Below, in pieces: positions 2,163-6,893 of a stretch of 8,867 nucleotides of DNA; position 1 is the first letter of the stretch, and each line of letters starts with the position of its first letter. This DNA is from Zygophlyctis sp. KS116. Lineage: Eukaryota > Fungi > Chytridiomycota. The stretch is from the NCBI GenBank assembly GCA_054661495.1, contig BAAFSQ010000363.1, forward strand, positions 1 to 8,867, read 5' to 3'. The position numbers and the translations under genes are program-made. Below the pieces are notes generated by a model, which saw only the letters and a program-made list of their open reading frames with translations, searched no databases and had not been told where the DNA came from.

Positions 2163-2208
2163 TTCTACACAATAAAAGTCTAGAGTTCGAACCCCATCAG
2201 AATTTTTT
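2163..2208. promoter_or_regulatory. Putative minimal bidirectional promoter between ATG12 and the STRAD-like gene
   Basis: 46 nt between the divergent ATGs at 2162 and 2209. Confidence 0.5.
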
Positions 2209-3210
2209 ATGCAAAATTTTGAATTGTTGTCCGATATCGGTAATTCGAATTGCTTATCGTAGGAGGAATAGAGGATATATCATATTTATATCTTGCTAGA
2301 TATACATCAAAAGATACGTTTGTATCTTTAAAATATACTGATCTGACATTATCAACAGACTTTGAGTTGATTCAGGAATTGCAGGTAACATGGTCTGTCT
2401 CGCTTACCAAAGAGGACAATACTAAATACTAAAATATGCAAGCATGACAATATATTGCCTTATTTTGAATCCTTTACGGAAGGAGAACAGCTGTGGACAG
2501 TAACATTACCATCAGAACGAGGTAATTGTAAATATTCAAGTTTAAGGGACGTGTAAGAACATACTTAAGTCGGCACCAGAGGGACTGAATCAAAATCAAG
2601 TCGCATTTGTTTTAAAGGGGGTCTTAAAGGCTCTCATGTATTTACATTCAAATCATATGATTCACAAGTAATTTTTTTCATATAATGCTAGTGATGTTAG
2701 AGCTGATAACATTGTGATTGATTCAGATGGCCAGGTTAAATTAACAGGCTTAAGACAAGTCACTCATTTGAATAAAGACGGAGAGTATCTAGATTCTATT
2801 TTCTCTTTAATTGGTGATAATCTTGAATGGGCATCACCTGAAATATTGGCGCAGGTAATATTTGTTGCTTTAAAGGTAGAATACGAATTATACAACTTCT
2901 GCAGATATATATAGTGTAGGAATAACAGCATTAGAGCTCTTCTTTAATAAAACTCCTTTTGATGACTGGCCACCGTTAAAGGTATACTTTTTCAACTCAA
3001 ATCTAGATTTTACAGTGTAAAATTGAATATCAAGTTCCAAAAATAATATCAGATAAATCCATGGACAAAAATATGTCTGATTTCATCCAATTATGTGTAA
3101 GAAAAAATCCAGCTGAAAGGTAACTACCAGAAATTAAATTTAGACCAACTGCCGAAGAGCTGCTAAAGCATCATTTCATTAAGGCGACTAAATTACAAAA
3201 ATTTACTTGA
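2209..3210 (+). CDS. STRAD: STE20-family pseudokinase, STRAD-like, 275 aa; exons 2209-2239, 2263-2384, 2413-2521, 2547-2667, 2692-2854, 2880-2981, 3007-3119, 3144-3210
   Basis: Seven GT-AG introns (23,28,25,24,25,25,24 nt) give an open kinase fold: KHDNILPYFESF, VAFVLKGVLKALMYLH, IHNDVRADNIVI, VKLTGLR (GLR replacing DFG as in STRAD-alpha), LEWASPEILAQN, ADIYSVGITALEL, PFDDWPPLKIL, ERPTAEELLKHHFIK. Confidence 0.8.
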
Positions 3211-4530
3211 ATAGATAGAATCCTTATCTAGATTTTGAAATGACATTAAACCATAACTCTCTCCACCAGAAAGTATTTTTGAACCTTGGTCAATTTTATA
3301 TTCACCTCGACAATTCCATAAACATTCTGAATTCAATAGTCGTTGCGCTAAAATGAACAGTCTTGGCAGCTTCTCTTCATTTTCTATCCAAAATGTTCTC
3401 ATATCTAATCCTCCATAATTGTCCTTTTCTTTCCAATATTCTTCAACCTTTGCAATTAATTTTTAAGGATTACTTCGTCCTCAATGGCAAATGTTTGATC
3501 AAATGGCGACCTTATCCTTCTATTCTTATCTATAAAAATACTTGAAGACTGTAATTTGTCCCATTCTTTTCTACAAGTTTCCTTCAGAAGTAATTTGAAA
3601 TCTGATGATTGATCATTTATGAAAATATCAGACTTTGTGAATATAGAAGGATCCAACAACGACCCAATAAAAAACGCCGAATTTTGATAAGACTTATAGC
3701 AATCTTCAATTTTGGACTTTAAATGACTTATGAATTTCATCGTTTTTTCGCAATAATCGTAATCATTTGCTTGAGAAATTGAGTGAATTCGATGAAGTGA
3801 TTCGTTAAAAATGGAAGATAAATGTATATAAGATGAATATTTTACATCATCACCCAGCTGAGAAGATCGTTCGCGCACAGTAAATTCTTTCAAGAATTCA
3901 GTTGATAGTTTGAGTTCTTTAAAATCGGCATTTCGGGCAATCCAAGATTCCGTAATATTAATCAAATCTTGATAATGGCAGTTCACAGAAAAACACAACT
4001 GAATATTAGGATTCTGGATGCATAAGCGTTCATGAAGTTTAGAAATTGAATGTTTCAGTTTTATATCGGCTATAATGATGGCAGAGACTTTCGCAACCAA
4101 TCCTAAGTCCACTATTTGTTCATAAACTACTTTTATATATTGATGTTCAGAATTGATTGGTAAAGAAAAGAGATTAAACCTTAGTGTTTTCATCCCCCTA
4201 GAAAAAAATGCTACTTGACAAACAAGTAATTCTTTCCGTATGACGAAAAATATCAGATTAAAGAAACTGGATTCACTAGAAATTATACTTGAGATTCGGT
4301 TAATATGTAGCTTATCCATAAGTTCAATTTTTTCCCGAGTTTTTCCATTCAAAAAACTACTGGTACTGAGATTAGATAAAAATGGCTTCAAATCATTGGT
4401 CGGTAAATTTGCAGCATTAATTGATTCAAATAATGACCGAGTATCCTCCGCCTTAAGCAAAGAAATATTTGCCAATGGATGGCGAGCCAAATCGAAACTA
4501 CTTATCATAAAAGATCGACCTAATAATGAA
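3193..4530 (-). mobile_element. hAT-transposase-derived coding region, probably domesticated and immobile; left boundary approximate
   Basis: Recognised by eye: the 'L..WGI..KV..IVTD'-like block, an LLDP block and the C-terminal dimerization-like 'E...Y...D...FW......P.L..LA..LL'. The S..SER.FS catalytic-Glu motif is absent, and I found no TIRs or TSDs. Confidence 0.6.
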
Positions 4531-6089
4531 AAACATTCCACCTCGTCAAATTCATTCGCTCTTAACTTAACCTTAAATTTTTTAATGGGGAAATCAATTC
4601 GACATTTAGTCTGAGTGATGTCATTTTTAAAATACAGGAGCGGATCTGGCCTAGCGGGGAAGCAATACAAGGACATGATATCTTCTTTCCTAACATAAAT
4701 TGAACTTGAGACGTACCTCATCGATCCTTCAGATATTTCATACGAGAATTCAAATGGTTCTCTAATAGATTTTCTTTTCTTTGGGTTTGCTGTTTCGGAA
4801 TTCCCTTGATTTTGAATGGTAACATTACAAGATTTATCATTCTTTGAGCAAAATTCACAAACTTTATCAATCCAAATGCAATTGATTTTCTATAATTAAA
4901 TAAAAAAAATACTCTGATAAAGCAATAATCACATTTTTTTAAAGATGATTGGGCAGCCGCAGTGCGATCTTCAATCTTAGTATGTTGAATACTTTTTGAA
5001 AATGAACGCAGAGGTAGAGGTTCAAAATTTTGAATTATATCGGAGTCATCAGAATCGCTTGTTTCTAAACTATTAGCACGACTTCTAAATATCAGAAGAG
5101 ATCCAAATTACATAGATTCTGATACAATGATATTTTGTAATAATGTTGATGAAAATAGATCACATGGTCCTTTTAGATGAAACGCCAATTTTTGAGATCC
5201 AGAAAAATCAACTTCTTGAAAATCCATCAATATTGATACAACATTTCTACTTATCAATCGCGTTACAAAGGATTTGATAGCTCTTATCTCTAAGGATGTA
5301 CCTATTATTAACAAAAGGTCTGGAGAGCTTGAAAAATCAATATCAAAAATTTGTGAAATCAAATGACCTTATCTAGTTATATCTTAAGATTCTATACCGT
5401 CAGGATTTGGACCCCCATTCTGTAAAACAACAAATGTCTGAAGTTTACCAACAGGCCTCTGTCTTTTATTTTCTGCCCTAGATCTGTTAGTTTCTTCACA
5501 GGAAGGACACGCAATATCACACTTATCGATTTGAAGCCGTTTGGCTAATTCGACTGTAAATTTTGTAGTATAATGGCACACACCACAAAACAGTTTTCGT
5601 AGATGGCCTATCTTTAGACTGCAAATCATACCATGTAATTGCACTACCTTGTTTTCTAGTTGAGCGTCAGATAAACTAGAGACTCTTTTTAGTCCAGATT
5701 GTGCTTCCAAGTCATCTATATTTTGAGTATAAATTCTCTTCAATCGCCCAGAGTCTGCCAATTTCTTTAAAAAAATATGAGTATCCGACGGAGCAGCAGT
5801 TTGCAGCATCATTTTCATATCTCCAATCTAAACAATTTAATTTCTGCTCGATTACCATTTGCAAGTATTTCCTTCCAATAGCTTGATCTGAATGAACTTG
5901 TACATAATCAAAAACATGTTTTCCATATTTCGAATAAATCCCTTCTGGTCCTCCCCGAAATGCAGGAATTCCACAAGACGTTGACATTCCTGCTCCAACA
6001 ACAGCAATTATATTCGATGATTTGTTCAGGATATTGATCACTTGTGAGAACTGCGCAGTGTCTGGAGAAGTAAATACTATGGGTGGCAT
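3193..6089 (-). CDS. Sirtuin (Hst3/Hst4-like) - Zn(II)2Cys6 - NLS - degenerate hAT transposase-like fusion protein, ~912 aa; exons 6089-5856, 5827-5632, 5607-5398, 5367-5112, 5084-4913, 4889-3474, 3447-3193
   Basis: Six GT-AG introns (28,24,30,27,23,26 nt) yield a 2739-nt stop-free frame. Sirtuin motifs GAGMSTSCGIPAFRG, YTQNIDDLE, QLHG, CGVC...CPSC, LLIIGTSL; Zn cluster CDYCFIRKINCIWIDKVCEFCSKNDKSC; PKKRK; hAT-like blocks LGLVAKVSAIIIAD, GSLLDPS, EVEEYW...FWIENEEKLPRLFILAQRLL. Confidence 0.8.
4827..4933 (-). other. Zn(II)2Cys6 binuclear cluster (GAL4-type DNA-binding domain), split by intron 4890-4912
   Basis: Exact C-x2-C-x6-C-x6-C-x2-C-x6-C spacing with basic RK between Cys2 and Cys3. It appears only after removing the 23-nt intron. 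Confidence 0.88.
5112..6089 (-). other. Sirtuin (SIR2-family NAD+-dependent deacylase) domain of the fusion gene, class Ic Hst3/Hst4-like
   Basis: All core motifs occur in order after splicing. RPVGKLQTFVVLQNGGPNPDG and PDLLLIIGTSLEI resemble the Hst3/Hst4 segments G.LRP.IVLY.E.HP.G and PD.LII.GTSLK. Confidence 0.9.
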
Positions 6090-6129
6090 ATGTTCAAGTT
6101 TAGGTTAAAAAAGTCCAAATCGGTATCTT

Positions 6130-6893
6130 CTATTCAAAACTAGTATTATATAGTCTTTGATAATAATTCATCAATGCAAAATCATTTTCTGTCAATGGAG
6201 TCAATGCCGCCCAGCCCTTTTCAAATTCTATATCTACATCTGAAATATGCCCTATGCTATCCTCTGGTACTGGAACAATCCAAGTCTCTTCTCTAGATCG
6301 TTTTTGCTAAATTTAGATTTGACATGCTTACTCTTTCACGGTCTTCTTCCATTCTTTTCAAAATTATATTTGGATCTCTCATATTATTATCATTATGCAA
6401 AATAGACAATAATGCAGTTGACTTGGCCTATACAAATGAGCAATAAAACAATTACCTTTTCAAGAATAATTTTTAGAGAAGAATCAATTTGTTCAAATAA
6501 CTCGTTTCTTAAGATTGCTTTTACTTTCCATTGAGTCAAAACTTTTCTTAATTGATAAACATTGGCTATTCCATCATCGGATTTGTTGGCTTGATCAACA
6601 ACTAAAGAAACTATTTCCTCTAATTTGGCCATTATTTGATCTACATAGCCATAAAACTGTAGTTTTGAAGCATGTTTACAAAGAGAATCCAAAACATAAA
6701 ATACATTAAGACGATTCAACGGAGGTGTTAAATTTAAATTCTCAATCAAAAGAATAAATAATTCTTCATAGTACTCTCTATGAGAATAACAAAAGTCAAC
6801 AATCCTTTGAATTTGGGAAGCAGATAGTTTCTTTTTAATGTTTTCAGTAAATACTGATCGGACAGTAAATATATCAGAGTAATGGGCTTCCAT
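6130..6893 (-). CDS. CTK3: CTD kinase I gamma subunit (Ctk3), ~236 aa; exons 6893-6456, 6427-6332, 6306-6130
   Basis: N-terminal CID-like region (DIFTVRSVF...NRLNVFYVLDSL...GIANVYQLRKVL). Removing 28- and 25-nt introns gives the Ctk3 C-terminal signature ILKRMEEDRERQKRSREETWIVP...EFEKGW. Start placed at ATG 6893 rather than TTG 6959. Confidence 0.88.

Follow-up and report, generated by a model that had tools for sequence, protein, structure and literature searches.

The 8,867-nt contig BAAFSQ010000363.1 of the chytrid Zygophlyctis sp. KS116, here called the window, raises the question whether a sirtuin and a transposase-like reading frame that adjoin on its reverse strand are one gene. Spliced, they form a single frame from an ATG at 6089 to a stop ending at 3193, in the order sirtuin, acidic linker, Zn(II)2Cys6 cluster, nuclear localization-like signal (NLS), and a body derived from a hAT transposase. 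The original prediction, made from the window alone, had proposed this fusion. We find that orthologs keep its introns and its frame and that the fold of the body matches the Hermes transposase, so that the single fused gene is very probably real, as judged from comparative sequence. It is hidden from metagenome gene callers because introns of 22–30 nt leave it split into unrelated fragments in every contig.

The joined frame and its relatives

Database searches and structure models were run on single exons or natural open reading frames, and the joined protein was used only for frame checks, alignments, and trees. A phmmer search with the body against 1.8 billion representatives returned one near-identical copy and one 33% relative (L001/L005). 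The sirtuin search, in which proteins up to 1.75 times the query length were listed, added L006, L007, L008, L010, L011, and L013; L012 came from a contig scan. Eight related loci come from other metagenomes, with sirtuins 53–98% identical, and one close relative was found per sample, apart from L013. The spliced relatives are 904, 892 (L005), 921, 942, and 695 aa long.

A frame of about 912 aa with six GT-AG introns of 23–30 nt had been predicted. All six introns hold and the frame is open, but a seventh intron, at 4716–4690, had been missed. Relatives show that it is real, since in L005, L008, and L012 its counterpart contains stops or breaks the frame; equivalents are also present in L006 and L007. 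With this intron spliced, the protein is therefore 903 aa, not 912. In L005, all seven introns lie at the same codon and phase as in the window, at a distance where synonymous sites are saturated. The L005 introns are 22, 24, 26, 27, 28, 24, and 29 nt long, lengths that differ from those of the window modulo 3, and splicing them leaves a single 892-aa frame.

The question narrows to intron 4, the junction intron between the sirtuin and the rest. It is GT-AG and in phase 2 in 9/9 full loci, with lengths of 27, 27, 27, 25, 28, 34, 55, 65, and 40 nt, and it leads into an open frame in all nine (400–610 aa in the full-length loci). The frame continues into the hAT body in seven of the eight related loci, six of which share the gene neighborhood; in L011, the junction splices into the body without any further intron. 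A GT[AG]..AG pair that joins the frames arises by chance in 0.5–6% of dinucleotide shuffles per locus, and the product over the seven less-related loci is ~7e-12, under a null that also rewards an open downstream frame. By splice-site letters alone, the junction intron was not separable from decoys; the weight matrix was overfitted to its training set and was not used.

As for its origin, the junction intron may be the sirtuin’s own last intron, with the hAT sequence captured in the tail exon, because L013 keeps this intron with only a short acidic tail behind it.

Domains of the spliced protein

Pfam found nothing on the long body exon of the window, and the body profile found no PDB sequence and, among proteins, only its own member, so that neither a donor hAT family nor a full-length ortholog with annotation was found. 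For window exon 7, all top rows in the ESM Atlas are hAT/ZBED1 with scores of 0.89–0.91, which serve as leads only. On a low-confidence model of the window body, Foldseek places Hermes at ranks 2–4, and VIA returns nothing more specific than helical or RNase H folds of a generic kind. The AlphaFold model of the L006 core, built from a 12-row alignment, is better (mean predicted local distance difference test score of 73). Its top 11 Foldseek matches are Hermes chains (best E 2e-8), VIA aligns Hermes over 332 residues with Z of 18.1 (next match 9.8), and all its Atlas shape matches are hAT. The Pfam family Dimer_Tnp_hAT reaches 31.2 bits in L006 against a cut-off of 21.4 and is weak in the window (E 0.057), and its matches end at profile position 42–47 of 84, before ERxFS. 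On these models, the body is of hAT fold and ancestry. The RNase H-like similarity, whose absence was to count against the fusion, is present, and the proposed hAT-like C-terminal half is borne out by the Hermes match.

The body keeps the fold without the active site. Catalytic positions were read from the hAT consensus (see also PMC4763223). Across 8 loci, the acidic triad (DDE) is not conserved, with no shared acidic residue at the end of β1 or in the ERxFS place, and CxxH is absent; the position of the first catalytic Asp reads F, L, N, H, K, or T, and ERxFS is gone in all members. One Asp is kept in the window subclade, one residue off the second catalytic site. A BED finger was sought without any zf-BED match or motif.

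Selection on the body was gauged by the ratio of nonsynonymous to synonymous differences (pN/pS). It is 0.47 for the body (p 0.003), 0.44 for the core against L003, a locus 96% identical to the window, and 0.09 for the C-terminal motif (p 0.002). From these ratios, the body is under real, though relaxed, selection.

The sirtuin is more readily recognized. Its exons score 28.5 and 45.8 bits with Pfam SIR2 (cut-off 24), and it keeps GAGxS, TQNID, the catalytic LHG, the CxxC..CxxC zinc ribbon, and GTS. Its pN/pS against L003 is 0.10, which means strong purifying selection. The nearest named relatives are in Diversispora, Gigaspora, and Kappamyces, at 33–35% identity. In a tree with few outgroups and long branches, in which yeast Hst3/4 themselves are not included, the fusion clade is sister to Hst3/4-like fungal sirtuins (100/99) and stands on a long stem (1.14).

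Between the two parts lies the region with the cluster. The FEPL motif of the linker is found in 8/9 loci. The cluster spacing, C-x2-C-x6-C-x6-C-x2-C-x6-C, fits the pattern C-x2-C-x6-C-x5,12-C-x2-C-x6,8-C, and its six Cys are invariant in 5 loci. Both this spacing and PKKRK are present in the spliced frame, as predicted. Cluster and KRK sit where hAT proteins carry the BED finger. The cluster is split by an intron, and on its half exon Pfam Zn_clus is weak (best E 0.069); the half-cluster profile gave no PDB match. Among the domain matches expected in the original prediction, SIR2 and the RNase H-like fold were thus recovered on the exons, Dimer_Tnp_hAT exceeds its cut-off in L006 and is weak in the window, and Zn_clus stays weak. 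As a possible lead, the fungal hAT element Restless encodes a Cys6 zinc motif and undergoes alternative splicing.

Proposed function and its alternatives

What could such a protein do? With somewhat better than even confidence, we propose that it is an old, single-locus, domesticated host-transposase fusion acting as an oligomeric, chromatin-tethered deacylase dependent on nicotinamide adenine dinucleotide (NAD). The protein would be nuclear, imported via the KRK signal. The dead hAT body would be an oligomerizing, DNA-contacting scaffold, like DAYSLEEPER or hDREF/ZBED1, and would hold the NAD-dependent enzyme on chromatin, with the Zn2Cys6 cluster adding sequence preference in its subclade. 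The tethered sirtuin would then remove lysine acyl marks locally, its substrate shifted from acetylated lysine 56 of histone H3 (H3K56ac). The outcome could be local repression or genome stabilization, possibly at repeats, as Hst3/4 do genome-wide. A more specific version we offer only tentatively: an Hst3/4-type sirtuin may have been made a self-targeting eraser by the dead hAT and a reshaped pocket, and one subclade may then have gained Zn2Cys6 where the BED finger is missing, and with it a one-protein, sequence-specific silencer that retention of the 27-nt junction intron would switch to a free sirtuin.

Several observations weigh against the tethered deacylase, or against parts of it. First, the pocket is altered. 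The acetyl-lysine loop reads LQNGG in all clade members, compared with LYGD, LYNE, or FFGE in outgroups, and GIPDF reads GIP[AP]F in all of them, with the Asp changed. Second, Zn2Cys6 is missing from L006, L007, L010, and L011, which have sirtuin and hAT without the cluster. Third, the body evolves fast, being 34% identical in a comparison that gives 80% for the sirtuin, and aa 431–540 are near neutral (pN/pS ~1 against L003). Fourth, three loci depart from the full form. L010 has a one-base frameshift in a T run of the hAT core (L010:4139-4145) on a scaffold with an N gap, and this is either an assembly error or decay, an incipient pseudogene. L012 has lost ~1 kb of the hAT body, and its final exon has decayed and carries stops (L012:1264-1520); this locus, 78% identical to L005, is left with sirtuin, linker, cluster, and NLS, a natural short form. 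L013 (L013:190-1260) shares its sample with L011 and has the junction intron and then only a 40-aa acidic tail; it is identical to L011 over ~200 nt and 90% identical overall, and would be a paralog or sister of L011 that supplies a free sirtuin, unless it is in part a chimera of the assembly. Fifth, RNA came from a single freshwater metatranscriptome run (X1), as four near-identical contigs of one read each. Two of them fall in the hAT body, the other two in CTK3, and none spans a junction, so this run is uninformative on splicing.

The second point bears on targeting. The only loci with Zn2Cys6 are the window, L003, L005, L008, and L012, and together they make up one subclade (100/99). Sequence-specific targeting by the cluster is therefore not the function that the clade shares. 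Because the cluster is confined to one subclade, the shared core is the sirtuin with the dead hAT. That the cluster was gained once is the simplest account, though it may instead have been lost in the other lineages.

The first point bears on the enzyme. Fungal Hst3/Hst4 are class Ic sirtuins that deacetylate H3K56ac (PMC6640630), and the FGExL loop forms a β-staple and an acetyl-lysine tunnel (PMC7696986). Judged by the FGExL-type loop (LY[NG][ED]) and GIPDFR, the sirtuin departs from the Hst3/Hst4 class. H3K56ac deacetylation cannot be assumed because the loop is changed clade-wide, and the altered loop hints that the substrate has moved away from standard H3K56ac. An Hst3/Hst4 sirtuin that removes H3K56ac had been predicted; by tree and motifs it is indeed Hst3/4-like, and its H3K56ac activity stays an assumption in view of LQNGG and GIP[AP]F. 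Going further, the fusion could be real and the sirtuin not a histone deacetylase at all, serving another acyl group, a non-histone target, ADP-ribosylation, or NAD sensing, with hAT as a binding platform. Both pocket changes and the long stem speak for it, but the protein retains the catalytic His, NID, GAGxS, GTS, and its zinc ribbon, and the nearest relatives are Hst3/4-like, and we consider it unlikely, if worth keeping in mind.

Another possibility, to which we give little credence, is that the work is done by the sirtuin and its acidic tail (plus NLS) and that the hAT body is a tolerated, slowly decaying passenger, the main product coming from intron retention or a short tail. This would suit L012, which lost the body and kept linker, cluster, and NLS, as well as L013, the low identity of the body, and its near-neutral stretch. 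Yet a 400–600-aa frame with the Hermes fold and FW..PRL..LA persists in six lineages across saturated synonymous divergence, and the pN/pS of the C-terminal motif and the core is low. A neutral passenger is disfavored because a neutral frame would have gained stops.

A two-gene arrangement, in which a free sirtuin stops at 5108 and a downstream ATG opens a hAT-derived gene of its own, is very improbable. If the junction intron is retained, a stop follows aa 299 at once, and retention would yield just such a free sirtuin. The tight packing of the locus and the lack of a junction read in X1 would also agree with two genes, as would early in-frame ATGs in several orthologs. In L005, the first downstream Met is 18 codons in, so that the predicted lack of an in-frame ATG between sirtuin and cluster holds for the window and L003 and not for every ortholog. 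In the window and L003, however, 113 codons precede the first in-frame Met, which lies past cluster and NLS, and in L010 it is 215 codons in. The linker, cluster, and NLS upstream of this Met have a pN/pS of 0.24 against L003 (p 0.03), and the same region has 0.36 among L005–L012 (p 7e-7). The two-gene model does not account for these 113 selected codons, with FEPL, six Cys, and KRK, ahead of the first possible downstream Met; the conserved frame-joining intron, very unlikely by chance, also stands against it.

The fused gene is domesticated, not mobile, because it has lost DDE, CxxH, and the BED finger, sits at a fixed locus, and leaves no space for element ends. Room for terminal inverted repeats is lacking because CTK3 ends ~40 nt upstream and the kinase overlaps the stop; neither these repeats nor an 8-bp target-site duplication was found at the locus, nor dispersed copies among the loci compared. 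A hAT element, active or recently so, with the sirtuin as cargo or anti-silencing factor is the least probable reading, since the hAT fold and the commonness of transposons with chromatin domains (bioRxiv 2021.11.30.470311) face a locus conserved in seven relatives and without long inverted repeats, a dead active site, and one close relative per sample apart from L013.

The locus, its introns, and known systems

Table 1. Features of the sirtuin–hAT gene in the window, in window coordinates.
Feature	Position	Strand	Remarks
Whole fusion gene	3193..6089	-	8 exons, 903 aa, one open frame
Exons	6089-5856, 5827-5632, 5607-5398, 5367-5112, 5084-4913, 4889-4717, 4689-3474, 3447-3193	-	
Hst3/Hst4-like sirtuin domain	5130..6089	-	aa 1-~292; Pfam SIR2, tree
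Altered acetyl-lysine loop VVLQNGG	5411..5431	-	equivalent of FGExL / LY[NG][ED]; invariant in clade
Acidic Ser/Asp linker	4934..5084	-	aa 300-349; conserved FEPL motif
Zn(II)2Cys6-type cluster	4827..4933	-	aa 350-377; split by intron 5
PKKRK, nuclear localization-like	4770..4784	-	aa 392-396; KRK invariant in 5 loci
hAT RNase H-like core with helical insertion domain	3474..4310	-	catalytic residues lost; ESM Atlas, AlphaFold2 with Foldseek
Last exon, first half of hAT C-terminal dimerization motif (FW..PRL..LA)	3193..3447	-	lacks the SSxxxERxFS catalytic-Glu motif
Intron 1	5828..5855	-	28 nt, phase 0; 22 nt in L005, 25 nt in L008
Intron 2	5608..5631	-	24 nt, phase 1; precisely absent in L003
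Intron 3	5368..5397	-	30 nt, phase 1; 26 nt in L005
Intron 4 (junction)	5085..5111	-	27 nt, phase 2; same place in 9 loci and paralog L013
Intron 5	4890..4912	-	23 nt, phase 0; inside Zn cluster; 28, 34, 25 nt in relatives
Intron 6	4690..4716	-	27 nt, phase 2, in frame; 24 nt in L005, 28 nt in L008, 25 nt in L012
Intron 7	3448..3473	-	26 nt, phase 0; 29 nt in L005; absent in L006, L007, L010, L011

The window is a gene-dense eukaryotic contig with 33% G+C and introns of 22–30 nt. Its gene order is JmjC, RPL7, ATG12, a kinase, the fusion gene on the reverse strand, CTK3, and CK2 alpha. The convergent forward-strand kinase (2200–3210), split by many micro-introns, was assigned by reading, and we take it to be STE20/STRAD-like. 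Compaction is extreme on both sides of the fusion gene: its stop codon and that of the kinase overlap by ~18 nt (3193–3210), and only ~40 nt separate the CTK3 stop from the sirtuin ATG (6089–6130). The kinase is also the next gene in L001/L005, L003, L006, L010, L011, and L012; L007 has other neighbors, and the L008 contig is too short to judge. In L011, the genes immediately upstream of the sirtuin–hAT gene encode histone folds (Pfam Histone / CENP-T_C; L011:537-1477). The window lacks Rfam matches, relevant tandem repeats, and long terminal inverted repeats, and a sigma-70 promoter scan of it stayed at chance levels, with a model not applicable to a fungus.

The RPL7 protein of the window has its best named matches in Chytridiomycota (83–84%), and in the RPL7 tree the window groups with L005 and L006 in a clade next to Rhizophydiales, Spizellomycetales, and Rhizophlyctidales; RPL7 also rejects Rozella as the host. 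Zygophlyctidales and Clade I, both parasites of phytoplankton, fall in the same part of the chytrid tree (bioRxiv 2023.06.28.546836) and are plausible hosts. As placed by these sequences, the host lineage of the fusion gene is uncultured freshwater Chytridiomycetes.

Intron 2 is present in the window, L005, L008, and L012 and cleanly gone in L003 (L003:2135-2146), a loss that, from the alignment, is a recent exact intron deletion. A further candidate intron, at 5448–5420, leads to a stop and was rejected. Intron length varies by lineage, from 22–30 nt here to 26–40 nt in L006/L011 and 52–76 nt in L007/L010, with positions persisting, and several sirtuin introns were gained or lost between subclades. 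The clade is thus a good system for micro-intron evolution. It is also a natural domain series of sirtuin–hAT, sirtuin–Zn2Cys6–hAT, sirtuin–Zn2Cys6, and sirtuin only, in which one can test directly how a sirtuin is redirected by the scaffold and by the change in its acetyl-lysine loop.

Captured transposases are known to have given rise to chromatin regulators, among them SETMAR, CENP-B, SLEEPER, and ZBED. To our knowledge, most enzymes fused with transposases come from animals and plants and are writers or readers. Host-transposase fusions are therefore not new as such; what is new here is a lineage-conserved sirtuin–hAT, and our literature search found no such fusion described, in keeping with the earlier impression that the architecture was undescribed. 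The type case is SETMAR (bioRxiv 2021.11.30.470311). Like SETMAR/Metnase (SET with mariner), the fusion gene has a host chromatin enzyme spliced N-terminal to a domesticated transposase at a single fixed locus; unlike it, the gene joins an eraser to a fully dead hAT, belongs to a chytrid, and in one subclade has an extra Zn2Cys6. A survey of 172 eukaryotes gives 823 gene models that fuse chromatin domains with transposable elements (bioRxiv 2021.11.30.470311). In the part of its table that was covered (Grau-Bove et al.), just two models join SIR2 to such an element, Chara SIRT6-Gypsy and ‘Notgen’ SIRT2-Harbinger DDE_Tnp_4. These too have a sirtuin and a transposable-element domain in one gene model, but in that part of the source they are single-species cases from other sirtuin classes and transposon superfamilies, none of them HST3/4 or hAT.

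Taken separately, both halves have known counterparts. The sirtuin resembles fungal Hst3/Hst4, its sister clade, in motifs and zinc-ribbon insert and differs from them by the 400–600-aa C-terminal fusion, the LQNGG loop, and GIP[AP]F. The body resembles DAYSLEEPER/SLEEPERs, ZBED1/hDREF, ZBED6/MGR, and Kat1 in having a hAT fold without element ends, an NLS beside the DNA-binding position, and a kept C-terminal dimerization motif. It shares catalytic loss with the SLEEPERs, which lost catalytic residues (PMC3499209), whereas Kat1 keeps DDE and cuts DNA (PMC4763223) and the fusion protein is without DDE. Unlike all these domesticated hAT proteins, it has Zn2Cys6 or nothing in the place of BED and is joined covalently to a sirtuin.

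In its proposed logic, the protein is closest in kind to fission yeast Abp1/Cbh1/Cbh2 with Clr3/Clr6 and Hst4, where a transposase-derived DNA binder and a deacetylase silence transposons. There, transposase-derived CENP-B recruits Clr3/Clr6 to Tf2, and Hst4 represses Tf2 (PMC7175516). The difference is that in fission yeast separate pogo-derived proteins recruit zinc-dependent histone deacetylases in trans, whereas here a single polypeptide would do both. If our proposal is true, a sirtuin eraser on a hAT scaffold, maintained throughout a deep fungal clade, is a one-protein version of the fission yeast system of CENP-B plus deacetylase.

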